Of a stretch of 64,000 nt of DNA, positions 15,856-62,105 are shown piece after piece. How positions within the stretch are numbered: the first letter of the stretch is position 1; every line of letters starts with the position of its first letter. Made by a program: the position numbers and the translations under genes. The stretch lies in IMG/VR virus record IMGVR_UViG_3300021520_000002, positions 1 to 64,000 of that record, one strand, 5' to 3'. A model generated the notes under the pieces. The model was not told the origin of the DNA. It searched no databases and was given only the letters and a program-made list of their open reading frames with translations.

Positions 15856-16551
15856 ATGATGTCTGTAATGTACTTATTTGAAGGTAAACCAGATAATCCA
15901 AACAGTGTAATTCTGTTGAATGAATACTATCCTAAAGGATTAACTCAACAACAAATCTATGATTATTACATGAATAATAAGAATAAGGTTCTCAATCAAG
16001 TTAAGAATAGAGAAGTGATGTTCTTTTTTGCAGTATCAAAGAATCAATTTATTGTTCGAAGAAAAGCTGCTGATGAATATTATAAACTTACTCCTGAGAA
16101 CTATGAAGACATGATTAATGGAAGAGTTGTATCAATTCATTCAACAATGAGTTCAAATGAAGAGTTTGGTATTATTGATATTGATTTTCATATTTTTGAT
16201 CAATGTAAGAAAGCTGCCGCTGAAATATATGATTATTTATTTAAGTTTTATAATAAGAATCTACAAATAAGATATACAGGTAAACAATCATTTCATATTG
16301 TTTATAATTTTAATAGATCATATAGAATTGAAACTGTTAAAGATTATTTGAAAGATGCTTTACATGGGCTTAATAAACAATATATTATTGGCGGCAAAAG
16401 ATCTGAAGAAAAAATAAATCTTGATCTTTCAAGTAATAAATATCGTGGTGGTTTTATTACTTTAAATTCATTATCAATAAATGGACTAAGATGTATGGAA
16501 ATAAAAAGAGAAGACTTAGACAAGTTTGTACAGAATCAGGCAAGAATCTAA
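15856..16551 (+). CDS. LigD-type primase-polymerase (AEP) domain protein with MxS leader
   Basis: LTQQQIYDYY, IIDID (DxD), YTGKQSFHI (motif II), INLD. Starts MMSVMYLFE. Confidence 0.65.
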   Translation: MMSVMYLFEGKPDNPNSVILLNEYYPKGLTQQQIYDYYMNNKNKVLNQVKNREVMFFFAVSKNQFIVRRKAADEYYKLTPENYEDMINGRVVSIHSTMSSNEEFGIIDIDFHIFDQCKKAAAEIYDYLFKFYNKNLQIRYTGKQSFHIVYNFNRSYRIETVKDYLKDALHGLNKQYIIGGKRSEEKINLDLSSNKYRGGFITLNSLSINGLRCMEIKREDLDKFVQNQARI

Positions 16552-16563
16552 GTTGGGGGTTTT

Positions 16564-16797
16564 ATGGTGTCTATATCTAATTTATTCGAAATCAATTTAA
16601 AATATGTGCCGATAGAAAAACAGAAAATGGGTGTAAGTGATAATTTTAAACATTATCTTGAAAGACTTAAATCAGATAGAGAAAAGATATTAGGTAAATC
16701 AGAAAGTGAAAATATTAATCCATTAAGACAATTTGGAAAAACAGAAACTGTAAATAGCAATCCAAATCCAATGAAACAGTTTGGGGTAGAAATATGA
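16564..16797 (+). CDS. MIS-leader family small protein
   Basis: Starts MVSISNLFE. Confidence 0.6.
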   Translation: MVSISNLFEINLKYVPIEKQKMGVSDNFKHYLERLKSDREKILGKSESENINPLRQFGKTETVNSNPNPMKQFGVEI

Positions 16798-17051
16798 TTA
16801 GTATAATTAATTTATTTGAAGAAATGAATATGGAAGTTCCTGGGAATTTTTCTGGAAGTGGAATAACCAGAGTAGTATCAAATAATAGTGGTGATGCACG
16901 AGAGGCAGAATTAGCAGCTTTCATGAAACGCCAAAGAGCAGCATTAAAAGAACAATCTGAATTACCACCAGGAGCAGAAAAAAGTCAAAAAAGACTTATG
17001 TTTAATCGTGGAGAAGAAATTAATGAGTTAGTAAGTAAATCAAAGAGGTAA
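16794..17051 (+). CDS. MIS-leader family small protein
   Basis: Starts MISIINLFE. Confidence 0.6.
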   Translation: MISIINLFEEMNMEVPGNFSGSGITRVVSNNSGDAREAELAAFMKRQRAALKEQSELPPGAEKSQKRLMFNRGEEINELVSKSKR

Positions 17052-17055
17052 TATT

Positions 17056-17247
17056 ATGATTAGTATTATATTTGAATTTAATTTTGATGATTTAAGTTTT
17101 GGTGGTGTCACTAGTAATGCTAAAAAATTAATAGCGGCAAAAACCGAACAAGATCAAAAACCAGGTTTACTTTCTAATATGTTAAAAAATAAAATTAAAG
17201 CAGGTATAGAAAATAAAATTAATACTTTAACTACAAAACCAATGTAA
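17056..17247 (+). CDS. MIS-leader family small protein
   Basis: Starts MISIIFE. Confidence 0.6.
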   Translation: MISIIFEFNFDDLSFGGVTSNAKKLIAAKTEQDQKPGLLSNMLKNKIKAGIENKINTLTTKPM

Positions 17248-17257
17248 GGGGTAAACT

Positions 17258-17464
17258 ATGATTAGTATTGTTGAAATGTTTAATACATCACCACAAGCTC
17301 TTTCCGATAAATGGAAATATTATAATAATGAAGCACAGAAATCTGGTAATATTGATTTACAAAATAAAGCTCAGAAAGCAGCAGCTCTTTCTAATGCCTC
17401 TTTATATCCTACTGGTTCAATATCATGGAAAAAATATATGGATAGAGCTAAAGGAGTTAATTGA
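17258..17464 (+). CDS. MIS-leader family small protein
   Basis: Starts MISIVE. Confidence 0.6.
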   Translation: MISIVEMFNTSPQALSDKWKYYNNEAQKSGNIDLQNKAQKAAALSNASLYPTGSISWKKYMDRAKGVN

Positions 17465-17583
17465 TGTTATCTATTATTGATTTATTTGAAACTAAACAAG
17501 ATAAAAAGAAAGAAAAAGAATCTGATAAATCAAAAACTAAAAAATATGATGAAGAACATGAAGGAGATGAAGACGATGATTAG
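17464..17583 (+). CDS. MIS-leader family 39-aa peptide, absent from the ORF track
   Basis: AAGGAG RBS; TGATG coupling with the upstream stop; MLSIIDLFETKQDKKKEKESDKSKTKKYDEEHEGDEDDD. Confidence 0.6.
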   Translation: MLSIIDLFETKQDKKKEKESDKSKTKKYDEEHEGDEDDD

Positions 17584-18013
17584 TTTAACTAATTTGTTTG
17601 AAATATCTCCAGAACATGTTGTGACTCCAGATTCAGATATTAATGGAAAATTTCTTGTCCATTTTCATCAAGCTAGAAAAGCTGGGGATCATTTTGATAT
17701 CAGATTAGGAAAAGATGGAGCTTTAGTTTCTTGGGCAACTAAAAAACTTCCAGAATTAATTGATGAAGAATCTAAGAAAATTATGTTGTTCAAACAACCA
17801 GATCATGATGCTGCTTGGTTCAATTTCAAAGGTGAAATTACTGATGGATATGGAGCTGGAAATGTCAATATCTGGGATAAGGGAAAATATAAGGTTTTGA
17901 AATGGGAAAAGAATATTATAACTGTTGATTTTAAAGGAACTAAAATAAAAGGAGTTTATACATTTCTTTTCTATGGTGAAGATAAATGGTTATTATTTAA
18001 ATCTAAGGGGTGA
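17576..18013 (+). CDS. LigD 3'-phosphoesterase (PE) domain protein with MIS leader
   Basis: ATG at 17576 after AAGGAG (MISLTNLFE); FLVHFHQA...HFDIRL...LVSWA...PDH...GYGAGNVNIWDKG...G.Y...WL. Confidence 0.85.
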   Translation: MISLTNLFEISPEHVVTPDSDINGKFLVHFHQARKAGDHFDIRLGKDGALVSWATKKLPELIDEESKKIMLFKQPDHDAAWFNFKGEITDGYGAGNVNIWDKGKYKVLKWEKNIITVDFKGTKIKGVYTFLFYGEDKWLLFKSKG

Positions 18014-18017
18014 TAGT

Positions 18018-19747: not shown

Positions 19748-19981
19748 ATGATATCAATTTCTAATTTATTTGAACAGGACGAAACCTGGATACAAGACGC
19801 GAAGCCAAAGAAAGGTTTACTTCATAGAAAATTAGGAGTTCCACAAGATGAAAAGATACCACAGGAGAAGTTACAAAGTATAAAAGATAGATTACACAAT
19901 AAAGCTGAAAAAGGAAAATTATCTCCTTCTGAACTTAAAACTTCAAGAAGAGTTAATTTTGCAATAAACGCACAAGGATAA
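19748..19981 (+). CDS. MIS-leader family small basic protein
   Basis: Starts MISISNLFE; WIQDA...KGLLHRKLGVPQDEKIP. Confidence 0.6.
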   Translation: MISISNLFEQDETWIQDAKPKKGLLHRKLGVPQDEKIPQEKLQSIKDRLHNKAEKGKLSPSELKTSRRVNFAINAQG

Positions 19982-30041: not shown

Positions 30042-31286
30042 ATGAATTTACCACCTTATGGAGATGATAGTAAGAGAAATTTTGCTCATTTTGGTACTCT
30101 TAAAGTAAGCTCACAAGACATACCAAATATGACTATAAAAATATCACCTGGTGGGTTCTGGTATTATACAAGTACTGGACCAATTTATGTTGAATTTGCT
30201 GGTGGTAATTCACCAACAATAACTAAACCGGGTACTAATGCTAAATGGGTAATAATAGCACTAAATTCTAGTGCTCAAATTGTTTTAATTGATGGTTCGA
30301 TTAGTGCACATCCTCAGGTACCAACAATTCCTAGAGGAAGAGTAATTCTTGCCGCTGTTTATGTTCAATCATCAACAACAGAAATTACTAATGATATGAT
30401 TTTTGATACAAGAGCATTGTTTGCTCAGTTTCCAACAGATCATAGAGATTTAGCTGGAACAACTGAAACTGGTTCACATCCAGTTTCATCGATTTCTGGA
30501 TTACAAACTATTTTAGATGATTTAGTTACAGAAGAAGACTTAACTACAGGTTTAGCAACAAAAGCAAATCAAACTGGTACTAATGAGTCTTCTTTTATTT
30601 TAAATGAAGATTTTCTTGGTACTCCTGCTTCTGATGTTAGTTTAATGGTTGAAAGAGGTAGTGAGAGTAATGTTGGTATAAAGTGGAATGAAACTTTAGA
30701 TCAATGGCAAGTAACTTCAGATGGTAGTATATGGAATACATTTGGTTCTGTTTCTACTAGTGGTGTGTCTGGTAGTTCAGGTACATCTGGCACAAGTGGA
30801 AGTGGCACAAGTGGAACTTCAGGTTCTGGAACAAGTGGTTCAAGTGGAACCTCTGGAATAGCTGGTTCTTCAGGAACTTCTGGAGCAGATGGAACTTCAG
30901 GTTCTTCAGGAACATCTGGAATAAATGGTTCTTCAGGCACTTCTGGTGTATCAGGTAGTAGTGGAACTTCTGGAAGTTCAGGTTTATCAGGTTCTGATGG
31001 AACAAGTGGGTCGAGTGGGTCGAATGGAACTTCAGGTTCTTCAGGTACATCAGGAGTAGATGGAACATCAGGTTCTTCAGGAACTTCTGGAGCAGATGGA
31101 ACAGCTGGTAGTTCTGGAACAAGTGGAGCAGATGGAACTTCAGGTTCTTCAGGAACGAGTGGAACATCTGGAACTGGTTGGAGTGGAACATGTTATGTTG
31201 GTAATACTTCAGGCACTTCAGCAGAACTTAATTATTATTTAACAATTAGTAATGGGATAGTTACTAATTTTGTTGGACCAGTGTAA
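30042..31286 (+). CDS. MNxPPYG-domain fibre paralog 1 with GST repeats
   Basis: Shared N-terminal domain; ERG...W...W module; GST repeats. Confidence 0.7.
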   Translation: MNLPPYGDDSKRNFAHFGTLKVSSQDIPNMTIKISPGGFWYYTSTGPIYVEFAGGNSPTITKPGTNAKWVIIALNSSAQIVLIDGSISAHPQVPTIPRGRVILAAVYVQSSTTEITNDMIFDTRALFAQFPTDHRDLAGTTETGSHPVSSISGLQTILDDLVTEEDLTTGLATKANQTGTNESSFILNEDFLGTPASDVSLMVERGSESNVGIKWNETLDQWQVTSDGSIWNTFGSVSTSGVSGSSGTSGTSGSGTSGTSGSGTSGSSGTSGIAGSSGTSGADGTSGSSGTSGINGSSGTSGVSGSSGTSGSSGLSGSDGTSGSSGSNGTSGSSGTSGVDGTSGSSGTSGADGTAGSSGTSGADGTSGSSGTSGTSGTGWSGTCYVGNTSGTSAELNYYLTISNGIVTNFVGPV

Positions 31287-34444: not shown

Positions 34445-34476
34445 ATCGGCAAGATTTAGAAATAGATCTTGCCGAT
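34445..34476. terminator. Hairpin built from paired TTGCCGAT motifs
   Basis: ATCGGCAAGAT...ATCTTGCCGAT, intergenic. Confidence 0.65.
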
Positions 34477-34508
34477 AATTAATTGGTATTTAATAGGAGG
34501 TAATTTTA

Positions 34509-36846: not shown

Positions 36847-36879
36847 ATCGGCAAGATTTAGAAATTAGATCTTGCCGAT
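36847..36879. terminator. Hairpin built from paired TTGCCGAT motifs
   Basis: ATCGGCAAGAT...ATCTTGCCGAT, intergenic. Confidence 0.65.
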
Positions 36880-36900
36880 AATTTAGTTGGAGGTAATTTA

Positions 36901-38569: not shown

Positions 38570-38603
38570 ATCAGCAAGATTTATATTTCAAGATCTTGCC
38601 GAT
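38570..38603. terminator. Degenerate hairpin of the TTGCCGAT family
   Basis: ATCAGCAAGAT...ATCTTGCCGAT (one mismatch). Confidence 0.55.
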
Positions 38604-38625
38604 AAATTTATAGGAGGTAATTTTA

Positions 38626-39513
38626 ATGAATGTACCACCTTATGGCGATGGTTATAAACGTGTAGGTGCTTATTTTTCAAATTTACAAGTAACAGCCCAA
38701 ACAGTACCAGGTATGACAGTAAAAATATCTGCTGGTGGATTTTGGTACTATTCTAATACAGGAGCTTCATATGTTGAATATGTTGGTGGTAATTCACCAG
38801 CTATGACTGCTCCAGTAGGTAATGCAAAATGGGTTATAATTACAATTGGACAGAGTGGTATAATTTCTATTGTTGATGGTTCACCTGGAGCACATCCAGT
38901 TTTACCAGCTGTTCCTGGAAAAGGGAGAATACCTTTAGCAGCAATTTATATTAATGCTGGAACAACTTCAATTACTAATGATATTATTTTTGATATTCGT
39001 CCATTATTTCCAATGGAAGTAAGAGATCATAGTGACTTAGAAGGTACTGGTGCAACAGGTTTACACCCAATAACATCAATTTCTGGTCTTGTTGATTCTC
39101 TTGCACAGTTAGTTTCAATGACTGCATTAGCTGCATATTTAGCTGATAAAGCAGATAAAACAGGTACAGTTGAAACAAATTTTATTTTAAATAAAGATTA
39201 CACAGGTACACCTGGATCAGATTGTTTATTTGAAATTGAAAGAGGTAGTGAAAGTAATACAGCTTTAAAATGGGATGAATATATAAATAAGTGGAGATTT
39301 ACTGATGATGGATCTGCTTGGATAACTTTTAGTGATTTTTATTTGAATGATGGAACACAAGAATTAAAAATATTAAGTTATACACAAGCAACAGAGCCAG
39401 ATCTTGCCGCTGATTCAAATATGGCTATATGGGTAGATTCTTCAGTTTCAAATCGTGTATATTTGGTTTATCGTAGGGGAACCGCAGATCAGGTTAAAAT
39501 AGAGTTAACATAA
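38626..39513 (+). CDS. MNxPPYG-domain paralog 5 (no GST repeats)
   Basis: Shared N-terminal domain and ERGSESN...W..W module. Confidence 0.7.
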   Translation: MNVPPYGDGYKRVGAYFSNLQVTAQTVPGMTVKISAGGFWYYSNTGASYVEYVGGNSPAMTAPVGNAKWVIITIGQSGIISIVDGSPGAHPVLPAVPGKGRIPLAAIYINAGTTSITNDIIFDIRPLFPMEVRDHSDLEGTGATGLHPITSISGLVDSLAQLVSMTALAAYLADKADKTGTVETNFILNKDYTGTPGSDCLFEIERGSESNTALKWDEYINKWRFTDDGSAWITFSDFYLNDGTQELKILSYTQATEPDLAADSNMAIWVDSSVSNRVYLVYRRGTADQVKIELT

Positions 39514-40159: not shown

Positions 40160-40363
40160 ATGATTTCAATTTCTAGTTTATTTGAAGCTCCAAATGTGCC
40201 TTCTGAACAAGCAAATGGATTAACTGTGCCGTTTGGAAATTATAATCCAGCAAAAAGAAATAATGAAGTTTTAGGTAATCTTCAAGGTTTAAACAAGTTA
40301 CCACTCGAAGATCAGGTTAAGAAGTTACGTGATAGTGGAGTTGATATTGGTACTTTTATATAA
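40160..40363 (+). CDS. MIS-leader family small protein
   Basis: Starts MISISSLFE. Confidence 0.6.
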   Translation: MISISSLFEAPNVPSEQANGLTVPFGNYNPAKRNNEVLGNLQGLNKLPLEDQVKKLRDSGVDIGTFI

Positions 40364-40374: not shown

Positions 40375-40560
40375 ATGATTTCAGTAAGTATATTATTTGA
40401 AGATGACAGTTCAATACAAAAAAATTTTATTCCAAAATTAGATCAAAAAGAAAATCAACAAACTATTCTTGGACTTATTAAAAAACCAATCAAAAAAATA
40501 CAAAATATTTTTATAGGAAATCCAGATTTTTCAGGAACAATTGCTGGATCACGTGGATAA
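40375..40560 (+). CDS. MIS-leader family small protein
   Basis: Starts MISVSILFE. Confidence 0.6.
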   Translation: MISVSILFEDDSSIQKNFIPKLDQKENQQTILGLIKKPIKKIQNIFIGNPDFSGTIAGSRG

Positions 40561-40569: not shown

Positions 40570-40743
40570 ATGATTTCTGTAAGTAGATTATTTGAAGATG
40601 GTAATTTAGTACAAAATACAAATCAAGAGAATAAAAATATTATTCAAGAAATTGTTAAAAAAGCAATTAAAAAAATATCTGTAGCTGTTGAAGGTAAAGT
40701 GGATGTTAGTGGACCTACAGCTGTTACTGGTATACGTGGATAA
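40570..40743 (+). CDS. MIS-leader family 57-aa protein, absent from the ORF track
   Basis: AAGGAG RBS; MISVSRLFEDGN...SGPTAVTGIRG; paralog of the previous ORF. Confidence 0.6.
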   Translation: MISVSRLFEDGNLVQNTNQENKNIIQEIVKKAIKKISVAVEGKVDVSGPTAVTGIRG

Positions 40744-40755: not shown

Positions 40756-40929
40756 ATGATATCAATTATATTTGAATTTGATTTAGAAAAAACTAGACAA
40801 GGATTTTTTAATAAACAAGTTAAAGAATTAGAAAATAAAAAAGAAATTCCTGGTACGATAGCTGAGAAATTACATCAAAAAAATATTGACAATATGAAAA
40901 TCGAAGCTAGTGGAAAGTATCCGAAATAA
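40756..40929 (+). CDS. MIS-leader family 57-aa protein, absent from the ORF track
   Basis: GAGGA RBS; starts MISIIFEFD. Confidence 0.6.
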   Translation: MISIIFEFDLEKTRQGFFNKQVKELENKKEIPGTIAEKLHQKNIDNMKIEASGKYPK

Positions 40930-42586: not shown

Positions 42587-42880
42587 ATGATTTCAATAGT
42601 AATGTTTATGGAAGCAATGTCTGATACTTTAGCAAATGCTGGAGAAGAAATGTTAAGTGGATTTAAAAAGACAGCTCAAGGTGCTGCTAGAGCTACTGGA
42701 GTTGGAGTTGATTCTGCTGGACATGGAATGAGTAAAGTTGCTGGTTGGGTTCAAAGTGGTGGAAAAGAATTGCAGAAAGATCCATTAGGAACTCCAGGAA
42801 TGATTCTTGGTGGTGTTGCTGGTCTTAGTGCTGCAGCTCTTTTAGCAAGAAGAAATAAACAGAAACAATATAGTGAATAA
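42587..42880 (+). CDS. MIS-leader protein with Gly/Ala hydrophobic tail
   Basis: MISIVMFME; ILGGVAGLSAAALLARRNKQ. Confidence 0.6.
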   Translation: MISIVMFMEAMSDTLANAGEEMLSGFKKTAQGAARATGVGVDSAGHGMSKVAGWVQSGGKELQKDPLGTPGMILGGVAGLSAAALLARRNKQKQYSE

Positions 42881-42893: not shown

Positions 42894-43322
42894 ATGATTT
42901 CTGTGATTAGTGAAGGTTGGTGGGCTGAAAAACAAAAAGAAAAAGCATTAAATCAAGAACAGTTTTCTCGTGATAATCTCAATAGTAAAATAAGAGAACG
43001 AGAAAAAGAAGAACAGTTTAAAATTTCAACTAAGAAAAAATTAGATGATAATTTAACAGATATGAGAGCTAAACTTAAAGCTGGAAAAATTGATCAGAAA
43101 GAATATAATGAATATGAAAAAGGTCATTTAAATACTAGATCTAAAGTTCTTGGAAATAAAGATCTTCCAGATGAACCTACTGTTAAACCATCTAGTGGAA
43201 AAATTATGGATTTAGTATCAGAACATCCATTAGCAGCAGCTGCAATTGGAGCTGTTGGTGTTGGTCTTGGTGCTCATGCTCTTCTTGGTGGTAGAAATAA
43301 ACAACAATCACCTAGTTATTAA
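42894..43322 (+). CDS. MIS-leader protein with Gly/Ala hydrophobic tail
   Basis: ATG at 42894 after GAGAGG; MISVISE; AAAAIGAVGVGLGAHALLGGRNKQ. Confidence 0.6.
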   Translation: MISVISEGWWAEKQKEKALNQEQFSRDNLNSKIREREKEEQFKISTKKKLDDNLTDMRAKLKAGKIDQKEYNEYEKGHLNTRSKVLGNKDLPDEPTVKPSSGKIMDLVSEHPLAAAAIGAVGVGLGAHALLGGRNKQQSPSY

Positions 43323-45271: not shown

Positions 45272-45493
45272 ATGGTATCAGTGGTTGAATATTTGAATGA
45301 AGGTAGAATTTGGAATTCATTAAAATCTAGTTTTGCTAATCTTTTTGGTGGACCGGCAAAAATTAAGAAATCAGATTTATCTTCAAATGATAAAATTGAT
45401 AACTCAGAAGCATCATATCGTCGTTTAACACCAAAACCATTAGCATCAACTAGAAATAAGCTTGGTTATAAACCTAAGAAAACTACAGTTTAA
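45272..45493 (+). CDS. MIS-leader family small protein
   Basis: Starts MVSVVEYLNE. Confidence 0.55.
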   Translation: MVSVVEYLNEGRIWNSLKSSFANLFGGPAKIKKSDLSSNDKIDNSEASYRRLTPKPLASTRNKLGYKPKKTTV

Positions 45494-45505: not shown

Positions 45506-45542
45506 TTATCGGCAAGACCTTTAAAATAGGTCTTGCCGATAA
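45506..45542. terminator. Bidirectional terminator-like hairpin of the TTGCCGAT family between convergent genes
   Basis: TTATCGGCAAGACCT, 7-nt loop, AGGTCTTGCCGATAA; perfect 15-bp stem. Confidence 0.75.
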
Positions 45543-45544
45543 AA

Positions 45545-46885
45545 TTAATTATTTATCATTATTTGTGAGATGTTTGTATAGCTTGGATCAAAAGTCATCA
45601 TCTTTCCACCTTTCACTATAATGAAAGTTAATGGAATATTATTTTTAATCCAGTTATATTTTGTATAGTTGTATTCAATATCTGAATGCATGTCTGTTAA
45701 ACTAATAACCATGCTTAAATCATCCTTATTCTTGTCCCAATATTCTTTTTCAACTAAGTCAAAAACACCTTTATGTGATGTTCCTCCACGACCTTTATAA
45801 CCTTCTTTTTTTAAGAAGTCATAAAAGGTATGAATATTTTCTAATGTGAATACTTTTTGTTGGTGGATAACTGAGTCATGTGTAATTAAATGTATTTCTT
45901 TGAAATGTCTCATACTATTTTCTGTTACACTTGAAAATTGTTTGAGATTTCGATCAGTGATAGATCCGGAAGTGTCAGTAAAAATTACTAATGTTCCTAC
46001 TCCTTCTACATCTTCTGTAAATGAATATCCTGGGAGTATTAGTCCATGAGGAATATAAATTTTATTTAATTGACGCCAACTTCTATCATCTGGTTTCATG
46101 ATGACATTTGTTTTAATTGATTTTTCAACTAAACGTTCCCAAGGTATTTCAACTTTTAGAAGTTCTTCTAAATATGTTGTTAAGTATCCTGGTAAGTCAC
46201 CTTTTGATTTAATTGTTTCAAAAACGGCTCTGGCTTCTGAAACTAATTGTTCAAGTTGATATGTGGCTTCTGGAGATTCAGTCATATCTTCTTTTTCAGA
46301 CTGACCTAGATCATCTGTCATTTCAAATAGTATATTATCATATTGATCTTTTACTATTATTGTATTCGGATCAGATCCAGAACCTATTATCATTTCAATA
46401 TGAATAAATTTTTCATTTTTCATTAACCAATCATATGCTTTTTCAACAGAACAATTTGGAAGAGCGTATTCTAATTTCTCAACAATATTGTATCTGTTTT
46501 GATATGGTTTTATAAGGTGTGATAAGTTTTTTCTTAGATATGTTTCAATAACATGATCTGCTGCAACACACCAAATTTCATGAATTCGATTATCTTTTCT
46601 TAGTCCATGTCTGTTTAAAATATGCATCAATTCATGACACAGAAGATAAACTAAATGAACAAATGAATAATCTGTTTTGCTCAAATAAAATTCATTTAAG
46701 TGAATCTTGCCGCTCTCAATGGATGATAAATCTTTTTCATTAAATCTTACAAATCCTTCTGCTGAAGGATGAAATTCATAAACCATCCAATCGAATTTAT
46801 GAAGCATCATTCCAAAAAAGATCAGTTCTTTTGTAAATAGTTTTATTTTGCTTAATCTAATTAAATCACCAATTCTGGGATTCAT
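45545..46885 (-). CDS. DUF2201-like metallopeptidase / vWA-domain protein
   Basis: HELMH (HExxH), W..AAD..I, DTSGS MIDAS, HDS, GRGGT, LTD. Confidence 0.8.
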   Translation of the reverse strand: MNPRIGDLIRLSKIKLFTKELIFFGMMLHKFDWMVYEFHPSAEGFVRFNEKDLSSIESGKIHLNEFYLSKTDYSFVHLVYLLCHELMHILNRHGLRKDNRIHEIWCVAADHVIETYLRKNLSHLIKPYQNRYNIVEKLEYALPNCSVEKAYDWLMKNEKFIHIEMIIGSGSDPNTIIVKDQYDNILFEMTDDLGQSEKEDMTESPEATYQLEQLVSEARAVFETIKSKGDLPGYLTTYLEELLKVEIPWERLVEKSIKTNVIMKPDDRSWRQLNKIYIPHGLILPGYSFTEDVEGVGTLVIFTDTSGSITDRNLKQFSSVTENSMRHFKEIHLITHDSVIHQQKVFTLENIHTFYDFLKKEGYKGRGGTSHKGVFDLVEKEYWDKNKDDLSMVISLTDMHSDIEYNYTKYNWIKNNIPLTFIIVKGGKMMTFDPSYTNISQIMINN

Positions 46886-46888
46886 TTT

Positions 46889-48130
46889 TTATACCTCGGA
46901 CATTGATTGACTAATTTCAATTACTGACTTTAAAACTTCTGAAGCTCTAGTTGGATCAATTTTTTGAATTTGTAAAATTATTTGATCGACAATATTCCTT
47001 TTCTTTAAAGTCTTTTCTAATTGTTTCATTTCTTTGAGCATCATAATAGAAAGCTCTGGAGCGTGTATCATAAATTGATCAATTAGATATGCTAAATTTT
47101 GTGTATATTTGGAACGATCAGATCTACCAATATAATTAGTTATTAATGCATAAGCTAAAGCATATCTTTTTACAGGGTCATCAGGAAGTTCATAACTTGA
47201 AGCACTCATTAAGATGCCATCAATATCGAATTCTGAATATACCTTGTAATAAATTACGAAATCACTTGCTCCTTCTTTTCCAACATATCCTGTTCCAAGA
47301 TATGAACAAATGTCTGAAGAAATTGTTTTTGTATACCATTCTTCACGTATTAAAATTTCTCTAGCGAATCTTGTCCATGATCTTGGAGAGCCCCAAGCTT
47401 GATCAACTTGTTCTTCTTCATGAAAATATTTTCTATATTGATTATGTCCAAGAAATGAAATAACGGCAGGATGGATTTTTACACCTTCTGTTAATGCATA
47501 ATTAGTTTTCCATCCATCAAAATCTGTATGGACTGGCATCATAACACATCTGTTTACGATAGCGCTAAATAAAGTTTTAGCACCTGATTTATTAGATGTA
47601 TTTCCAGCCATAACAATAGCAACATTCTGTGGAAGCTTATAGCTACGTAATGAACGTTCTGTTAAAAGTTCATACAAAAGAGCCATGTGGATTGGACTTA
47701 AAAGATGAGCATCGTCAAGCAACCAAATTACAAGTTTAGGTTTCTGTTCGATTATTTCTTTACCATCTTTATCTTTGGCTTTAACACTAATAGTTTCACT
47801 AGCTAATTCAAATAATGTTTTCATAATATCTGGAAAAGACCATATAGTTCCAATCATTGGTTTTCCATTAATTATGATGTTTTCAAATTGTGGAATACCT
47901 CCAGTTTCTTCTAATGGTTTAAGTGCCAAATGTGTTGATAAAATTCCAAAATTATATAAAGTACTTAAATAATGTAAACTGGCTGTTTTTCCACCACCAG
48001 GCGCACCACAAATAAAAGGTGTTCCTACATCGTAACCTTGAACTTGAAGATAACAATTTTCAATCACAAGATTAATAACTTCATGTAAAGCTTTTGATCC
48101 TTTTGTAAATTGTTCGTTGTCTGTAAGCAT
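46889..48130 (-). CDS. MoxR-like AAA+ ATPase
   Basis: Walker A GAPGGGKT, Walker B WLLDD, MAGN, NR, SPRSW; GGAGG RBS on the minus strand. Confidence 0.85.
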   Translation of the reverse strand: MLTDNEQFTKGSKALHEVINLVIENCYLQVQGYDVGTPFICGAPGGGKTASLHYLSTLYNFGILSTHLALKPLEETGGIPQFENIIINGKPMIGTIWSFPDIMKTLFELASETISVKAKDKDGKEIIEQKPKLVIWLLDDAHLLSPIHMALLYELLTERSLRSYKLPQNVAIVMAGNTSNKSGAKTLFSAIVNRCVMMPVHTDFDGWKTNYALTEGVKIHPAVISFLGHNQYRKYFHEEEQVDQAWGSPRSWTRFAREILIREEWYTKTISSDICSYLGTGYVGKEGASDFVIYYKVYSEFDIDGILMSASSYELPDDPVKRYALAYALITNYIGRSDRSKYTQNLAYLIDQFMIHAPELSIMMLKEMKQLEKTLKKRNIVDQIILQIQKIDPTRASEVLKSVIEISQSMSEV

Positions 48131-51127: not shown

Positions 51128-51331
51128 ATGATTTCAGTTTCTGATTTATTCGAAATATCTCCAATTAATATTGATAATTATAAAAATACAAATCGAGAAC
51201 CAGAAGCAAAAATAATAAATCATTTGATTAATATTAAAGGTAAAGATCCACAAGCATATAAAGCTGAAAGACCATATTTATTGAATCAGATAAAACAAAA
51301 TAAAGTTGCCGATAATAGGAGTTTATCATGA
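51128..51331 (+). CDS. MIS-leader family small protein
   Basis: Starts MISVSDLFE. Confidence 0.6.
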   Translation: MISVSDLFEISPINIDNYKNTNREPEAKIINHLINIKGKDPQAYKAERPYLLNQIKQNKVADNRSLS

Positions 51332-51678
51332 TTAGTGTTAGTCAAATATTTGAGTCTGAATTAGATGGACCTTTAGATGATTATTCATATCTTTTACATC
51401 ATGTTGAAGTAGATGATAAAGGTAATGAGAATTTACATCATTGTTTTGTATATGATCATTTGGGTAATATGTTTACTCAAGATACAATTATTATTAAAGA
51501 TGGAAAATGTTATGATGGAAATAATAAATTATTAAAAGATGGAACTTATCATTCAATTTCAGGTTTAGAACCAGAACAAGAAGTTTGTTGGAGTGATTCA
51601 CAAGCAGAAGAAAATGGAATTAAACCAAAACGTATGGTTGCAGGAATGACATATAAACAGAAAGCTAAGGAGTGGTAA
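51328..51678 (+). CDS. MIS-leader family protein, His-rich
   Basis: Starts MISVSQIFE; LLHH..., LHHC, HSI. Confidence 0.6.
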   Translation: MISVSQIFESELDGPLDDYSYLLHHVEVDDKGNENLHHCFVYDHLGNMFTQDTIIIKDGKCYDGNNKLLKDGTYHSISGLEPEQEVCWSDSQAEENGIKPKRMVAGMTYKQKAKEW

Positions 51679-52388: not shown

Positions 52389-52826
52389 ATGATTAGTGTA
52401 AATTATTTATTTGAAGGTGATGAACCTAAAGGGGTTATAACAGATGAAAATATTTTAAAGGATGTAAAAAAGACACAAGAAATTCAAGATGCTGTTATAA
52501 GACTTATTATAGACAAAAAACTAAGACCGGATGATGATGACATTCATAATCTTGCCGGTAAATTTAATATGGACCCACATGAGTTTGAAGAAGTTATTTA
52601 TGCTTTACTTGGTGATTTAATTACTAAAAGTGCTGGAAAACATAAGGATATTCCAATATCAAAATTTGATCCAAAACAAGTTAAGATAGGGATGAAAATA
52701 GAAAAAGAACATTCAGACAATCCAGCGATAAGAGCAGAAATAACTAAAGATCATTTAGCTGAATTTCCAAAAGATTATTATACAAGATTAGTTAAATTGG
52801 AAAAAGATGCTAAGAAAAATAAATAA
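52389..52826 (+). CDS. MIS-leader protein with DUF5661-like C-terminal domain
   Basis: MISVNYLFE; FDPKQVKIGMKIEKEH...ITKDHLAEFPKDYYTRL. Confidence 0.6.
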   Translation: MISVNYLFEGDEPKGVITDENILKDVKKTQEIQDAVIRLIIDKKLRPDDDDIHNLAGKFNMDPHEFEEVIYALLGDLITKSAGKHKDIPISKFDPKQVKIGMKIEKEHSDNPAIRAEITKDHLAEFPKDYYTRLVKLEKDAKKNK

Positions 52827-53259: not shown

Positions 53260-53454
53260 ATGATTAGCGTTATAGCTGAAATATACAACAATCAAAAATT
53301 TCAACCAAATACAGTTGAAATTCCTAATCAGAATCAGCCACTTCCCCCAACAAATCTTTCTAGAGAAATACCAGTTCCACAACCACAAAATAAAAGAGTT
53401 ACAACTGTGACTAATCCTATTTTTAAAAATTCACCAGTTCCAGTTGGAGGATGA
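53260..53454 (+). CDS. MIS-leader family small protein
   Basis: Starts MISVIAE. Confidence 0.55.
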   Translation: MISVIAEIYNNQKFQPNTVEIPNQNQPLPPTNLSREIPVPQPQNKRVTTVTNPIFKNSPVPVGG

Positions 53455-53455: not shown

Positions 53456-53761
53456 ATGATAAGTATATGTGAATTTCAAGATGAAGTTCTCGCTAAATAT
53501 GAAGCCCAAAGAAAAGAGTTATATAATAGAGTACATCCAGATGAAGCTCATAGTGGTTTAGATAAGGCTAGTAAAGCATTAGAAAGTAAACCAGAAGTTA
53601 GAAATTATAGAGCTGTAGAACTACCAGTTAATAAAGAACCTTTTGATAAAAAAATATTAAAAAAAGTTGGTCAAGGTATAGATAATGCAGATGGTGGAGT
53701 AAGAAAAATATTTACTTCATTCAATCAAGCTGGTCAAAATATATATTCTGCAACTCATTAA
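53456..53761 (+). CDS. MIS-leader family protein
   Basis: ATG at 53456 after GGAGG; starts MISICE. Confidence 0.55.
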   Translation: MISICEFQDEVLAKYEAQRKELYNRVHPDEAHSGLDKASKALESKPEVRNYRAVELPVNKEPFDKKILKKVGQGIDNADGGVRKIFTSFNQAGQNIYSATH

Positions 53762-53773: not shown

Positions 53774-53965
53774 ATGATAAGTATGGTGGCTGAACAGATT
53801 ACAGATGAAGAGATAAATGAATTTATGGGTAATCTTGGTAAATCTTTAAAGAAAAATAAAGAAGAAAATCAATCTGAAGGTGAAAAACTAAAAGATAAAA
53901 TAGATCAAGAAAAACCATTTAAAAATTTTCCTTGGCAAGATAAAAATAAACAAACACAGGTGTAA
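53774..53965 (+). CDS. MIS-leader family small protein
   Basis: Starts MISMVAE. Confidence 0.55.
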   Translation: MISMVAEQITDEEINEFMGNLGKSLKKNKEENQSEGEKLKDKIDQEKPFKNFPWQDKNKQTQV

Positions 53966-53967: not shown

Positions 53968-54294
53968 ATGATATCAATTTCTAGTTTATTTGAGGGAGAA
54001 AATATTATAGAAAAAGTTGTTGATGAAAAAAAATTTAGAAAAAAATTTGATCAAGGTTCTTTAAGATATAATATGATGTTGGGTTCATTAATAGCACCAG
54101 CTTCATTAGCGGCAAAAACTGCATTTGTTGATAAAGATATTTTAAATAAATTAAATCAGGATCATACATTGGCTGCTCCTGCTGCGTTAGCTGCAGCATC
54201 AGCTCTTGGTGCTGGAAGTGCAGCCGCTATACATGGGGTTGTTAAAAGTTATTTTAAAGTAAGAGATAAAATTAAAAGGAGAAAGAAACAATGA
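53968..54294 (+). CDS. MIS-leader protein with Ala/Gly hydrophobic segment and basic tail
   Basis: MISISSLFE; AALAAASALGAGSAAAIHGVV...KRRKKQ. Confidence 0.6.
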   Translation: MISISSLFEGENIIEKVVDEKKFRKKFDQGSLRYNMMLGSLIAPASLAAKTAFVDKDILNKLNQDHTLAAPAALAAASALGAGSAAAIHGVVKSYFKVRDKIKRRKKQ

Positions 54295-54497
54295 TATCAA
54301 TTCTTTCCGATATTAATCAATTTGCTGGACTTATGAGAACTGATCCAAGATTACTAATACAAATAGCTGCTAAAAAAGCAGCATCAAAAGGAACAACATC
54401 AGATGAAATTAATCAACATGTTGATAACACTGCTAAAGAAGGTACAGGAAAAGTTACTAAAAAGACTATAAAAAATATTATAGATGCAGGAAGGTAA
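54291..54497 (+). CDS. MIS-leader family small protein
   Basis: Starts MISILSD. Confidence 0.55.
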   Translation: MISILSDINQFAGLMRTDPRLLIQIAAKKAASKGTTSDEINQHVDNTAKEGTGKVTKKTIKNIIDAGR

Positions 54498-54499: not shown

Positions 54500-55333
54500 A
54501 TGATATCTATTATGGAAATTTTTGATAGACCATCACCGGATACTAGATCATTTGCTCAAAAAGCTTTTGGTGCTAAAGCTCCTGAAAGAACCCCAAATCT
54601 TGCCGATAAATTAAAATCTTCATATCAAGACAAGATTAAAGAGACTAAAGATTTTCGTAGAGATATTATAAATAAGAATGTAGAAAATTTAAAATTAAAA
54701 ACATCCAATTGGATTAAGCCTAAGGATGAAAACAACACATCTAAATTTAGTAAATTTAGAACTGGTGTGTCTAATTTAATAAGACCTGAAAATGCTGAGA
54801 ATATTAAACCAAGAAATCTTGTTGATGATGCGCGTGATATGATTGGTTCTAGAAGGGTTGAAAAAGGTTTTGAACAAAAAATTGGTAGATTAAATCAATT
54901 ACAAAAGAATCAACAAGCTAAAAGAAATCTTAGTGATTTAACTAATGCTTCTGATAAATATAGAGAACAACATCCTATTAGAACGGCAATTTTCGGTGGT
55001 ACTCCACAAGAACGAACTGGATTTTTAGGAGTTAAAGGAATATCTGATTTAGAAAAAGCTCAAATAAGAGCAGATAATGTGAAATCAACTTCACCATTAA
55101 AAAATCAAAGTGGTGCTTATAAAAGTGCCGATAGATTTTTAGATACTGTTGAAAATAGGAATAGAAAAGGAATAGGTGTTGCACAACCAGCTTTAAATAC
55201 AACTAATCCAATTCCACAACCAGCTGCAACTAATCCAACAACTATAACTCAACCAATACAAAATGTTATTAATGGTCAAGCTGTAGCAAAAAGAAAAAAG
55301 AGATTAAATGATATGGGTGTATCAACTGCTTAA
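54500..55333 (+). CDS. MIS-leader basic protein
   Basis: Starts MISIME. Confidence 0.6.
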   Translation: MISIMEIFDRPSPDTRSFAQKAFGAKAPERTPNLADKLKSSYQDKIKETKDFRRDIINKNVENLKLKTSNWIKPKDENNTSKFSKFRTGVSNLIRPENAENIKPRNLVDDARDMIGSRRVEKGFEQKIGRLNQLQKNQQAKRNLSDLTNASDKYREQHPIRTAIFGGTPQERTGFLGVKGISDLEKAQIRADNVKSTSPLKNQSGAYKSADRFLDTVENRNRKGIGVAQPALNTTNPIPQPAATNPTTITQPIQNVINGQAVAKRKKRLNDMGVSTA

Positions 55334-56837: not shown

Positions 56838-57251
56838 ATGATATCGATTATAGCTGAAGTTAGTAAAAGTTTTAATATGAGAGATAAATTATATAAAGCT
56901 AGTAATGAATATAAAGATGCTGCTAAAAATTCTTCAATTTTTGCTCCGTTTAAAAAAGCACAATTATATGCAGCATCAGTAAGAGCTGATAAATTAGGAA
57001 AACTTATCAATTCAAAAATAAATGATGAACATTTAGTTTATGATAAAAGTGATATAAATTTGGCGAAAGTATTTCAACATCCAAAACGGGAATTAATTGA
57101 TAGAATTAATAATCAACCAGAAGTTAAAGAAATGATAAATAGAGCTGAAGGTGGTAAATCAAAAGTTCCTGAAAATTTAAAAAATTTATCATCAGCTTTA
57201 AAACAAACTGGAATGGGTATAAGAAATAAAATTTTTAAATCTTTTAAATAA
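56838..57251 (+). CDS. MIS-leader family protein
   Basis: Starts MISIIAE. Confidence 0.6.
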   Translation: MISIIAEVSKSFNMRDKLYKASNEYKDAAKNSSIFAPFKKAQLYAASVRADKLGKLINSKINDEHLVYDKSDINLAKVFQHPKRELIDRINNQPEVKEMINRAEGGKSKVPENLKNLSSALKQTGMGIRNKIFKSFK

Positions 57252-57269: not shown

Positions 57270-57776
57270 ATGATATCAATAACAGAAGTTCAGAAAGGGT
57301 ATTCCGGATATAAAATGGAACATGTGGGATCTGGTGTTGGAAAAATAATTGGAGGAACAGTTCCTGGTCCAGCAGCTGTAATAACAATTCCACTTGGTCA
57401 TTATATAGGAAAAAATGTTCCTAAAGATCCAGAGAAAGATATTGATGAATCTAAGAGAACTCATAGAGTTGCAGCTATTGCTGATGAAAGACTTAGAGCC
57501 AAAAGAATGTTAAAACATGCAGCTGTAGGCGCATCTATTGGTGCTGCTGTAGGGGCAACAATAGGAAAGAAAAAAGGAGCAGTTATTGGTGGAGGAGTAG
57601 GATCAGTTCTTGGATTAATTTCTGCTGGTGCAGTAGGTGGTTGGAGAGGTGCTGAAAAGCTTGGTTATGGACCAATTGGTAAAACTTCTGCCGCTCTTCC
57701 TTTTCCAGGAGAATATACTGGATTGTTAGCTCCTTCAGGAATAAAAATAGATGCTGTTCCGGAGGAAAAGAAATAA
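57270..57776 (+). CDS. MIS-leader glycine-zipper protein
   Basis: MISITE; AAVGASIGAAVGATIGKKKGAVIGGGVGSVLGLISAGAVGG. Confidence 0.6.
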   Translation: MISITEVQKGYSGYKMEHVGSGVGKIIGGTVPGPAAVITIPLGHYIGKNVPKDPEKDIDESKRTHRVAAIADERLRAKRMLKHAAVGASIGAAVGATIGKKKGAVIGGGVGSVLGLISAGAVGGWRGAEKLGYGPIGKTSAALPFPGEYTGLLAPSGIKIDAVPEEKK

Positions 57777-58447: not shown

Positions 58448-58448
58448 A

Positions 58449-58637
58449 ATGATTAGTATTGTTGAAACAAAATTTGGTGTAGGTTTATCAGAACAATTAA
58501 GAAGAATTAATCCATTAAATCTTCCAGGCATTACTAAACTTGAACCTATTGATTTAAGTAAAAGATTAAATTCTCAAAATAGAGATTTAAATAATTTAAA
58601 AATGACATTATCATTGTTTAAACAAAAATCTAAATAA
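58449..58637 (+). CDS. MIS-leader family small protein
   Basis: Starts MISIVETKFGV. Confidence 0.55.
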   Translation: MISIVETKFGVGLSEQLRRINPLNLPGITKLEPIDLSKRLNSQNRDLNNLKMTLSLFKQKSK

Positions 58638-58899: not shown

Positions 58900-59061
58900 A
58901 TGATTTCAATAATGGAATCATTTTTTTGGAATTATTCAAACTGGGGAGAGAAAACCCCAAAATCAGTTTATACACTTACAGATGAAGAAGCTAATAAAAA
59001 AGATACTGAGATCAATAAAGATAATTTAATAATTCGTGATGAAAACATTACAGTTACATAA
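58900..59061 (+). CDS. MIS-leader family small protein
   Basis: ATG at 58900 after GGAGG; starts MISIME. Confidence 0.55.
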   Translation: MISIMESFFWNYSNWGEKTPKSVYTLTDEEANKKDTEINKDNLIIRDENITVT

Positions 59062-59883: not shown

Positions 59884-59966
59884 ACGGAAGAGTAACATTT
59901 TAATGTTGCTTCTAAAAATATATAGAAATTATACAATTTGAAAGCTTTTTAAAAAAAGAATAAATT

Positions 59967-61256
59967 GTGAGGATTAAAATGTTTTTAGAGGCGTTTGGAG
60001 TGGATGCATCAAAAACTGATGTAAGTTTAGATATATCTTATAAGCTTTTATTTTATCATATTAATGATGAATTACTAAAAGCTTCGGGTGACAGTAATAT
60101 TATTATTGCCACTAAGTTAATTGAGAGGTATTGGAAAGATTTAGATAGTAATCTTGGTGATACAATTCAAGATAGACATCCTTTAGTTAAAGGATTATAT
60201 TTTTTGTATCAAACAGGTAATGCTCTAAATAGATTCAATGAAAACGATTTAAAAATATCTAAAATTAAATTTCGTTCTAAAGTTTTATTTCCGTATTTAA
60301 TTTATATTCTTCAACAATATTTACCTAAGGTTCGACAATTTTTACAATATATTGTTTGGTCATCTTATGAAGAGATGAAAAAGAAATCGGCAGGTGCTGT
60401 CAATTTCTATGTTAATTCATTATATCTTGATCAAGATGTAATTAAACATGAGGTATTATTAGAATTTTTAGGTAATGCAATGATTAAATTTAGTCCATTA
60501 GATGTAGGAAATGTTAATGCATTTTATAAGAAAATCTTCAGAAATATTTTTAATTTTTATTTTAAGTATAAACAAAGTAATCAACCAATTTGGTCTAATT
60601 TTTGGAGTATTGAAAATGCTATAACATCAGTTAATACATCGGCAAGATTATCTGTTTATCGGGATGTTTTATATGGTCTCGAAGTTGAAAAACTTTATAA
60701 AGATTCACCAATGTTATCTCAGTTAGGTTATAATTATAAAATTTTTAGAAATTTAATTATCAATAATGAAATTCAAGATATTTATATGTCATTAGATCCA
60801 TGTAGTGCTGTTGGTATTTCCAATAACGAATATAAATTGCTTAAAATTTATGATGATGATATTATGAATGAGCGTCTTATAGACAAAATTCGCAAACTAC
60901 CAACAGTATTTAAATTACTTAAATGTATTCATATTGTTAATCCAAAAGGTAAACCACATAATGAAATGGTTATCAAACCAGAATTATTAAAATTTGCCGT
61001 TAGAGATGAATTAGTACATCCATTTAGAAATTTCTTTAATGATAATTATTTATTACCTATTTTAGATAAGGTTGCTGAAAATTTTGTAAACTCTTTATTG
61101 ATGGGTGATTATATAAATTTAATAACGTTGGCACCCATAAGAATTAATCAAATTAGTTTTGTAGAACAGATACGAAAATTTGTACGCATCTGTTTAGATG
61201 AAATGTCCAACGTTGGAGGCGAAATAGAAGATGTTAGAATCAGAGCAATTCGATAA
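59967..61256 (+). CDS. Hypothetical protein
   Basis: 429-aa ORF; true start may be ATG at 59979. Confidence 0.6.
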   Translation: MRIKMFLEAFGVDASKTDVSLDISYKLLFYHINDELLKASGDSNIIIATKLIERYWKDLDSNLGDTIQDRHPLVKGLYFLYQTGNALNRFNENDLKISKIKFRSKVLFPYLIYILQQYLPKVRQFLQYIVWSSYEEMKKKSAGAVNFYVNSLYLDQDVIKHEVLLEFLGNAMIKFSPLDVGNVNAFYKKIFRNIFNFYFKYKQSNQPIWSNFWSIENAITSVNTSARLSVYRDVLYGLEVEKLYKDSPMLSQLGYNYKIFRNLIINNEIQDIYMSLDPCSAVGISNNEYKLLKIYDDDIMNERLIDKIRKLPTVFKLLKCIHIVNPKGKPHNEMVIKPELLKFAVRDELVHPFRNFFNDNYLLPILDKVAENFVNSLLMGDYINLITLAPIRINQISFVEQIRKFVRICLDEMSNVGGEIEDVRIRAIR

Positions 61257-61713
61257 ACAAGAAATATCATCTAAATTTGAAGATCAAAGATCACAATTAG
61301 ATGCACAAATTACCCAACTTGGGAGTAGAATTTTATCTTTACAAAAACATATTATATCTTTAGAACATGCTAATAGTGTCCTTGATCAACTTGCAAAAAA
61401 TGAAAAAGATGGAACTAAAATAAAACAATATTATGGTGCAATGAAACAAAATATTGAATTATTAGCAAAACTTTATGAAGTTATTAAAGAATATGAAGGA
61501 ATAAAATTTAAATATTATAAAGAAATAGATGATATTATGATTAGTAAATATAGAATGATTTCAGTCGATATTAAGAAACTTGAAGAAAGACTTAATGGTG
61601 CTGATGATGTGTTTGGTTTCTTTGAAAGATTAACAGAAGCTTTAAAAAATTCTGGGTCTAAAAGGGAGCTAGTTAAAAGCGAATTACAAAGTGATCCAGA
61701 TTATAAGTTGTAG
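61231..61713 (+). CDS. Coiled-coil hypothetical protein
   Basis: Heptad pattern; GGAGG upstream. Confidence 0.55.
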   Translation: MLESEQFDKQEISSKFEDQRSQLDAQITQLGSRILSLQKHIISLEHANSVLDQLAKNEKDGTKIKQYYGAMKQNIELLAKLYEVIKEYEGIKFKYYKEIDDIMISKYRMISVDIKKLEERLNGADDVFGFFERLTEALKNSGSKRELVKSELQSDPDYKL

Positions 61714-61724
61714 GAGGAATTAAT

Positions 61725-62105
61725 ATGATATCTATTATAAGACCGGGGGCATTTTCTGGAGGGGAATTTCCTGATAATGATAGAGCTATTCCACTCGGTG
61801 GTAAAATAGTTAGAATAATAAGAATAAGAGCAATTCCGATAAAGTCTGATGAAGAAGAGGTAAAAGATATGGTAGATGAAAAATTAAATCAGATTCCAGA
61901 TGAAGAATTAAATCAGGAACCAGATGAGAATGAATTTGATGATGAAATAGAACAAATTTCGGATGATGAATTGGATGAAATTCCAGATGAAGATGAAGAA
62001 TTAGATGAACTTCCTGAATTTGATGTTGATGAATTAGATGAAGATGATGCTGAAGATTTTGAAGATGAAGAAGAAGATTTTGAAGGAATGGAAGACGATA
62101 TATGA
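61725..62105 (+). CDS. Highly acidic protein with MISII start
   Basis: C-terminal two-thirds dominated by D/E with (Q/E)IPDEEL repeats. Confidence 0.6.
   Translation: MISIIRPGAFSGGEFPDNDRAIPLGGKIVRIIRIRAIPIKSDEEEVKDMVDEKLNQIPDEELNQEPDENEFDDEIEQISDDELDEIPDEDEELDELPEFDVDELDEDDAEDFEDEEEDFEGMEDDI

Follow-up and report, generated by a model that had tools for sequence, protein, structure and literature searches.

Internal proteins of T-even phages are small, basic and diverse and have only a capsid-targeting sequence (CTS) in common (PMC3012670, PMC9026906). In T4, the CTS comprises 10 residues, of which residues 4 and 7 target the protein and residues 8 and 10 direct its processing; a protein with Asp at the last CTS position is still targeted but no longer processed (PMC9026906). 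The T4 prohead protease gp21 cuts after L/I-X-E (PMC9026906, PMC10052503, PMC5694885) and itself carries LIE-9 (PMC9026906). Here we describe a similar arrangement in bases 1-64000 (hereafter the window; 64,000 nucleotides) of the 285,572-bp IMG/VR record IMGVR_UViG_3300021520_000002, where window and contig coordinates coincide. In this window, 29 genes encode proteins that share a short N-terminal tag, beginning M-[IVLM]-S-[IVLM] and usually ending in hydrophobic-x-Glu. We estimate a probability of roughly two in three that this tag is a T4-CTS-like propeptide that loads proteins into the phage head and is removed by a gp21-type protease.

A second point of reference is provided by the jumbo phages phiKZ, 201phi2-1 and SPN3US, which likewise possess an S80-family protease (gp175/gp245) that cuts after Glu. 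The S80 proteases of giant phages recognize S/A/G-X-E or A-X-E and in every case cleave behind the Glu (PMC9026906, PMC10052503, PMC5694885), whereas the third residue before the presumed cut (P3) is never Ser, Ala or Gly in the tag described here. The heads of these phages enclose many different proteins, more than 50 head proteins being counted in SPN3US; only nine SPN3US proteins are cleaved, eight of them losing an N-terminal propeptide, and ~80% of the head proteins are untagged and uncleaved (PMC10052503). The propeptides of phiKZ-like phages are mostly 111-254 residues long (PMC10052503) and not uniform, in contrast to the uniform tag of 6-9 residues found here across the whole set. The functionally closest known system is the T4 CTS with gp21. 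By analogy only, encapsulin cargo-loading peptides illustrate that a short terminal peptide suffices to put unrelated cargo into an HK97-fold shell; those peptides mostly sit at the C-terminus, contact the shell themselves and stay uncut, and neither a protease nor DNA is involved.

The source of the window is an uncultivated jumbo phage of 285 kb with multisubunit RNA-polymerase genes. We extended the contig beyond the window by exact-protein look-ups as well as by pattern or relative scans, and thereby sampled contig positions 1-127 kb and 181-211 kb, that is ~157 kb of the 285 kb. The G+C content of the window is ~30%, and its genes lie nearly all on the + strand behind strong AGGAGG-type ribosome-binding sites. 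Essentially the same phage is present in ~19 contigs from several public assemblies. Among 50,697 deposited phage genomes, megablast with two window segments found no close relative, and a tblastn search of deposited phage genomes with the capsid protein gave no match.

A shared N-terminal tag on unrelated proteins

An earlier note on this DNA had pointed to about 29 proteins with a common leader. All 29 coordinates are indeed ATG codons of open frames (39-277 amino acids) that read M-[IVLM]-S-[IVLM], and almost all are preceded by a GGAG/GAGG-type Shine-Dalgarno sequence at a distance of 5-12 nucleotides. Independent gene calls in public assemblies gave the same starts and the same product lengths, and the window contains no additional M-[IVLM]-S-[IVLM] start. 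The motif [ILVMF]-x-E ends at residue 6, 7 or 9 in 27 of the 29 proteins; as had been noted, the gene at 54291 has Asp instead of Glu, and that at 61725 has no nearby acidic residue. The tagged genes of the window are as follows (coordinates, strand, product length in amino acids, start of the product and remarks):

15856..16551, + strand, 231 aa, MMSVMYLFE; no Pfam match
16564..16797, + strand, 77 aa, MVSISNLFE
16794..17051, + strand, 85 aa, MISIINLFE
17056..17247, + strand, 63 aa, MISIIFE
17258..17464, + strand, 68 aa, MISIVE
17464..17583, + strand, 39 aa, MLSIIDLFE; very Lys/Asp/Glu-rich
17576..18013, + strand, 145 aa, MISLTNLFE; LigD 3'-phosphoesterase domain at residues 29-130 (PF13298, E=2e-19)
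19748..19981, + strand, 77 aa, MISISNLFE; the orthologue in relative L011 begins MISMSYLFE
40160..40363, + strand, 67 aa, MISISSLFE
40375..40560, + strand, 61 aa, MISVSILFE; weak paralogue of 40570
40570..40743, + strand, 57 aa, MISVSRLFE
40756..40929, + strand, 57 aa, MISIIFE
42587..42880, + strand, 97 aa, MISIVMFME
42894..43322, + strand, 142 aa, MISVISE; one transmembrane-like stretch
45272..45493, + strand, 73 aa, MVSVVEYLNE
51128..51331, + strand, 67 aa, MISVSDLFE
51328..51678, + strand, 116 aa, MISVSQIFE; the tag of the orthologue in relative L017 is MLSIVDLFK
52389..52826, + strand, 145 aa, MISVNYLFE; DUF5661
53260..53454, + strand, 64 aa, MISVIAE
53456..53761, + strand, 101 aa, MISICE
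53774..53965, + strand, 63 aa, MISMVAE
53968..54294, + strand, 108 aa, MISISSLFE
54291..54497, + strand, 68 aa, MISILSD; Asp replaces Glu
54500..55333, + strand, 277 aa, MISIME; isoelectric point 10.3; a search of 5.8 billion proteins yields only 2 homologues
56838..57251, + strand, 137 aa, MISIIAE
57270..57776, + strand, 168 aa, MISITE; glycine-zipper or transmembrane-like stretch
58449..58637, + strand, 62 aa, MISIVE, then TKFGV
58900..59061, + strand, 53 aa, MISIME; orthologues MISIME (L017) and MIAIHE (relative L015)
61725..62105, + strand, 126 aa, MISIIRPGAF, without nearby Glu; L017 orthologue MISIIRPNAF

Nine more tagged genes were found on the contig outside the window, bringing the total to 38 in ~157 kb. 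Based on length, these tags fall into a 9-mer class MIS[IV][ST]xLFE (21 genes), a 7-mer class MIS[IV][IVL][AFS]-E (seven genes) and a 6-mer class MIS[IVL]x-E (eight genes), with two outliers; in 36 of the 38, [ILVMF]-x-E ends at residue 6, 7 or 9. With a first-match rule (n=34), the presumed P3 position is occupied by Leu (16), Ile (13), Val (4) or Phe (1), hence by Leu, Ile or Val in 33 of 34 cases, and the presumed P1 position by Glu (30) or Asp (4). The motif is far above chance: it starts 35 of the 142 genes at contig 1-107 kb, compared with 0.7 expected from composition, and occurs at only 4 of 675 internal Met residues, while a DNA pattern for the long tag form matches seven times in the window against 0.01 expected. 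Behind the tag the proteins are almost all unrelated, as the earlier note had stated, with only four weak pairwise BLASTP matches between the mature parts of the 29 (E 1e-5 to 8e-3).

We next consider whether the common start could be a feature of the DNA or mRNA rather than of the peptide, either through AT-rich early codons that favor translation initiation or as a cassette for gene-shuffling recombination. A+T makes up ~70% of the genome, the tagged genes are densely arranged (median gap 10.5 nucleotides), and one orthologue pair has a rewritten tag on a remainder that is 86% identical, all of which would suit such an origin. The codons argue against it. Ser3 is encoded by TCN in 22 and by AGY in 13 cases, compared with a genome share of 67% TCN (p=0.59), and the Ile codons of the tag are ATT (17) and ATA (13), compared with genome-wide fractions of 0.59 and 0.36. 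Codon choice in the tag thus mirrors the genome-wide synonymous usage, indicating that the constraint acts on the peptide, as had been proposed earlier. Since the tag DNA differs at synonymous sites, tags would also be poor recombination substrates. Moreover, the conserved Leu-Phe-Glu sits 7-9 codons into the gene.

The distribution of the tag along the contig bears on the same question. The + strand arm at 1-107 kb is the structural arm, containing genes for tail fibers, baseplate-like proteins, the large terminase, the head, the sheath and a 1643-amino-acid tape-measure/transglycosylase. Only 3 of ~100 genes sampled in the minus-strand early/metabolic arm carry the tag, compared with 35 of 142 in the structural arm (Fisher p=1.4e-6), although the same ribosomes serve both; there are none among the ~49 genes at contig 107-127 kb and three among the ~51 genes at 181-211 kb. 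The earlier note had named an equal frequency of the motif among replication and metabolic genes as pointing to a translation-initiation bias; its ~10-fold lower frequency in the early/metabolic arm excludes a general bias of this kind. In the sampled contig, the tag is missing on the terminase, sheath, tail fibers, RecA-like protein, ribonucleotide reductase and helicases, as well as on the RNA-polymerase pieces and an Apyc1-like protein; one 52-amino-acid tagged open reading frame (ORF; MISITRLFE) lies directly upstream of, and overlaps, an RNA-polymerase piece. Taken together, we consider an explanation without any peptide function hardly credible.

The tag convention is common to at least eight related IMG/VR contigs, in which marker proteins are 48-83% identical to those of this phage, and drifts in the more distant relatives (MLSIYKLFE, MIALSPLFE, MLPVSFLFE). 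Between 51328 and its L017 orthologue the body is 86% identical and the tag is rewritten; elsewhere the tag is kept and the body has diverged. The tag behaves as a separate module. A single similar start was seen in 50 kb of the Yersinia phage phiR1-37, where gp045 (L032:1549-2655), annotated in its record as a phage structural protein and confirmed by mass spectrometry, begins MMSLTSLLLE and resembles the tag of 15856 (MMSVMYLFE).

Head module, prohead protease and the predicted route of the tagged proteins

At contig ~92-97 kb, a portal candidate (702 amino acids), an acidic protein (162 amino acids), a protease (254 amino acids) and the major capsid protein (535 amino acids) are encoded in this order, followed after the capsid gene by two tagged genes (MISLFE... 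and MISVSILFE...). This order resembles that of T4, which is 20, 67/68, 21, 23. In a relative with 53% capsid identity, portal and protease weakly match the Pfam families Portal_T4 and Peptidase_S77, and some capsid homologues match Pfam Gp23.

The earlier note had suggested looking for a gp21-like prohead protease, and such a gene was found immediately upstream of the major capsid gene (L007:87-851). Its product matches Pfam Peptidase_S80 with 26.8 bits (cut-off 23.4). Its 208 homologues carry PF03420 (S77, T4 gp21) and/or PF20034 (S80, phiKZ gp175), and some are labeled "S80 family phage morphogenetic serine protease" at NCBI. In an alignment of 79 sequences His85, Ser151 (within G-F-S-L-R-A) and Asp178 are invariant. 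The family profile matches PDB entry 5JBL, the T4 prohead core protease gp21, with E=1.8e-5, and the 5JBL residues opposite His85 and Ser151 are both Ala, presumably mutated catalytic residues; a phmmer search of the PDB with the single protease sequence gave no match. An AlphaFold2 (AF2) model based on the 79-sequence alignment reached pLDDT 77, and 5JBL is its sole structural match (Foldseek E=3e-10; TM 0.83, relative to the target). The head module thus encodes a T4 gp21-type prohead protease (MEROPS S77/S80, herpesvirus-assemblin fold).

The end of the tag reappears in the head module itself, where an [LI]-F-E element lies near the N-termini of the capsid protein, the protease and the acidic core protein. 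Essentially all of the 87 full-length capsid homologues listed, down to 37% identity, begin with M, 1-15 residues and then [LI]-[FY]-E-N-Y-x-x-[FY]-[ILV]-x-[ED]; a few deviate at single positions. In the second motif of this region, [ILV]-x-[ED] ~8 residues past the first, x varies freely (N, T, K, R, M, H, S, Q), as is characteristic of a site recognized as [ILV]-x-E. In the protease family, Y-x-F-I-F-E14 is conserved, recalling LIE-9 of T4 gp21. The acidic 162-amino-acid protein (isoelectric point 4.3) begins MLLVEVLFE, and its relatives begin MFLVEVLFE and MFLCEILTE. A similar pattern is kept by four orthologues of a conserved 216-amino-acid protein (window 57797), which read K-[IVL]-[IL]-x-E14 with A, T, T and H at x.

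Likeness to the T4 CTS (IPI/IPII/IPIII, Alt; gp21) therefore extends over several levels: a short propeptide at the extreme N-terminus that ends in [L/I]-x-Glu, its presence on otherwise unrelated, small and basic proteins, a protease of the same fold and family within a portal - core protein - protease - capsid module, and matching motifs near the N-termini of protease and capsid protein. Even an Asp-for-Glu variant exists here (54291), a change that in T4 blocks processing only. The differences are equally clear. The consensus is MIS[IV]...LFE, with only the terminal hydrophobic-x-E in common with the T4 sequence; the tag has 6-9 residues in three length classes instead of 10-20; at least 38 tagged genes in ~157 kb compare with a handful in T4; and some tagged proteins bear enzyme domains, in an uncultivated 285-kb phage with multisubunit RNA polymerase. 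Judged by sequence, the tag is an analogue of the T4 CTS and not a homologous tag.

Based on these observations, we propose the following route. The tagged proteins would be made late, together with the products of the structural genes, and their hydrophobic start (Met-Ile-Ser-Ile/Val, usually followed by x-x-Leu-Phe) would dock them onto the assembling prohead core, which would comprise the acidic core/scaffold protein, the protease and the capsid protein, each with [LI]-F-E near its N-terminus. After closure of the shell, the gp21-type serine protease would cut past the Glu of [L/I/V]-x-E and free mostly small, Lys-rich, basic proteins inside the head, beside the DNA, with which they would probably leave at infection. 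By analogy to T4, targeting by the N-terminal part and processing at hydrophobic-x-E are probably separable. That the tagged proteins dock, are cleaved, end up in virions and are ejected, and that some may be effectors, is inferred.

The composition of the tagged proteins can be read in two ways. They have a median length of 77 amino acids, are rich in Lys and have a median isoelectric point of 9.6, compared with 6.2 for the other + strand proteins of up to 280 amino acids (Mann-Whitney p=4e-4). Most are ORFans without family assignment: Pfam and PHROGs searches with the tagged proteins returned almost nothing except LigD_N, DUF5661 and a glycine zipper. Domain-bearing tagged genes outside the window encode a DUF5662 protein (contig ~67.4 kb) and an HD hydrolase (contig ~188 kb). 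The tag might simply mark substrates of the same protease that form the prohead core, the scaffold or DNA-condensing parts, to be degraded or kept as structural filler and not delivered as effectors. Most tagged proteins are tiny (39-110 amino acids), of low complexity, Lys-rich and without domain matches, and the acidic core protein has a similar start; the T4 core proteins gp67/gp68 and the scaffold are likewise gp21 substrates (PMC5694885). A LigD 3'-phosphoesterase, an HD domain and DUF5661/5662 domains, in contrast, make little sense as filler, and the fast turnover and ORFan nature of the tagged proteins resemble those of arms-race cargo. Avoidance of [IL]xE in the mature parts would further argue that they survive the protease. 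There, [IL]xE occurs 26 times compared with 34.2 in shuffled sequences (p ~0.06), whereas [IL]xD is enriched (48 against 31.3 expected); other proteins show the opposite trend (282 [IL]xE against 254 expected), and the contrast in the E:D ratio between tagged mature parts and other proteins has p=0.013 (Fisher). This would be the pattern expected from avoiding internal cleavage sites and provides a weaker hint. On balance, we regard a pure core or filler role of the whole set as unlikely. For the earlier proposal of a portable, T4-CTS-like tag this means that the tag itself is backed by the protease, the shared [LI]FE, the basic cargo and the bias between the arms, whereas for the cargo, described there as effectors, a DNA-condensing or core role is equally possible.

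Five proteins with differing leaders (window 48222, 58449, 58663, 59071 and 59979, with MKNINE, MISIVE, MKTNE, MINNE and MFLE) align just past the Glu at x-[KRA]-F-G-[VA]. This is a weak hint that their homology begins where the cut is presumed to fall. We considered this E-x-[KR]-F-G-V family as evidence for a boundary at Glu and rejected it, as the alignment is too weak.

Alternatively, the tag could be a sorting or stability signal unrelated to the head, such as a recognition site for a chaperone or protease of the phage or its host, a timed degron, or an address for another phage compartment or part of the virion. In favor of such a role, MIS[IV] is fixed at the N-terminus wherever the Glu lies, MISII persists in 61725 and its orthologue in the absence of Glu, and three tagged genes lie among RNA-polymerase and nucleotide-metabolism genes. 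It would leave unexplained why the tag ends in just the motif at which T4 gp21, a relative of this phage's protease, cleaves, why capsid protein, protease and core protein carry [LI]FE, and why tagged genes cluster with structural genes. Sec, Tat and lipoprotein signals combine a basic n-region, a hydrophobic core of at least 10 residues and an A-x-A or lipobox-type cleavage site. Such features are also missing, since the tag has only 6-9 residues, lacks a basic n-region and ends in Glu, and a transmembrane-like stretch occurs in only 2 of 34 tagged proteins, far from the N-terminus. We therefore rate a signal of this kind as quite improbable.

Several observations weigh against head loading by a cleavable propeptide. 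MIS[IV] always sits at the N-terminus, whereas the Glu follows at different positions (6, 7 or 9); the invariant part thus has no constant spacing to the presumed scissile bond and may have a different function. The 6-residue tags are shorter than any demonstrated CTS, and two tagged proteins lack the Glu (54291, 61725). The three tagged genes of the early arm sit in a cluster of replication, RNA-polymerase and ribonucleotide-reductase genes, and one of them encodes the HD hydrolase. Among cultured phages, phiR1-37 has the protease most similar to that described here (32% identity), yet the 50 kb examined of its genome show no uniform tag. The depletion of [IL]xE is by itself marginal. Finally, untagged genes of the structural arm (27 of 99) and genes of the early arm (25 of 93) equally often (27%) encode [IL]xE by itself among the first 16 residues, so that only the full tag is diagnostic; a wider substrate set defined by any such N-terminal [IL]xE was rejected for this reason.

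Other features of the contig and its relatives

A search for a late promoter shared by the tagged genes yielded only a general intergenic hairpin that is not specific to them. This conserved element, ATCGGCAAGATCT-N7-9-AGATCTTGCCGAT (RNA fold -20.6 kcal/mol, z=-5.5), lies 25-40 nucleotides upstream of many structural-gene starts, including those of tail fibers, the terminase and the tagged gene that follows the capsid gene most closely. It was found in the window at 1092-1130, 34446-34482, 36848-36885, 38596-38620 and 45509-45545 and on the contig at 72998, 77391, 84256, 91276, 97374 and 106263; in front of some tagged genes, only the right half-site TTGCCGATAA occurs (51306, 58870). The hairpin could act in termination or processing or be linked to a promoter.

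Besides tagged genes, the window contains glycosyl- and methyltransferases, a DUF2345/DUF3540-like (VgrG-spike-type) protein, a RecA/UvsX-like gene and the following features:

1563-4957, + strand: tandem array of five paralogous genes of ~220 amino acids each, none MIS-tagged; three of the five start ML[VI]KIAGRVRG, and the other two have GRVRG slightly further in
7806-10565, + strand: multi-PAS protein of 919 amino acids with about six PAS domains (PAS_9 E=8e-55), a sensor-type protein unusual for a phage structural region
12753-13337 and 14148-15839, + strand: otherwise different proteins with a common start MIREIKID, a smaller second shared N-terminus; the latter is a glycosyltransferase/methyltransferase fusion
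30042-31286, 31361-34021, 34509-36839, 36901-38553 and 38626-39513, + strand: five tail-fiber-like proteins with collagen repeats
45545-48130, - strand: the only clear minus-strand genes of the window, a pair encoding a DUF2201 metallopeptidase/VWA-like protein (446 amino acids) and a weakly AAA-like protein (413 amino acids; AAA_22 E=0.006, under the Pfam cut-off), which resembles MoxR-VWA pairs

The five tail-fiber-like proteins have an N-terminal domain of their own in common (~125-230 amino acids, start MNVPPYG), also present in relatives, which probably serves all of them for attachment to the baseplate, their distal parts having been swapped. Outside the window (L035:8220-8972; L031/L036, contig ~181-211 kb), the phage encodes an anti-Pycsar Apyc1-like protein with a metallo-beta-lactamase fold, a ribonucleotide reductase, a dUTPase, a radical-SAM protein and, in several split genes, beta/beta'-like parts of a multisubunit RNA polymerase. 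In relatives, inserts of 0.3-1.5 kb divide the capsid, portal and RecA-like genes, all intact here, into two ORFs (L028:9406-11880 and 4460-8151; L029:9598-12523 and 4860-8390; L017:12595-14300). The largest of these inserts hold extra ORFs, and they are probably introns or homing-endonuclease insertions.

Scale of the tagged set and its meaning

The earlier note had expected a repertoire much larger than that of T4. By number of tagged genes this stands, whereas the principle is not new, since T-even proteins that share only a CTS have already been described; the advance lies in scale, tag design and lineage. In our literature search, we came across no account of a tag of this kind from uncultivated jumbo phages. 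It is quite possible, and we propose it tentatively, that a freshwater jumbo-phage clade loads several dozen proteins (>10% of its genes), including an HD hydrolase and a LigD-type 3'-phosphoesterase, into its capsid via a tag of 6-9 residues; no larger set of packaged, and probably injected, phage proteins defined by sequence would then be known.

If this holds, T4-style targeting would scale to tens of cargo species with tags shorter than any tested, and a second, independent pair of short tag and protease would become available for studying cargo sorting into HK97-fold shells. The ~40 fast-evolving ORFans per genome would be candidates for host takeover in the first minute of infection or for anti-defense. 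If the tag acts like the T4 CTS, a sequence rule would predict the internal or injected proteome of the whole uncultivated jumbo-phage clade, and the injected proteome of uncultivated phages could be read directly from sequence.

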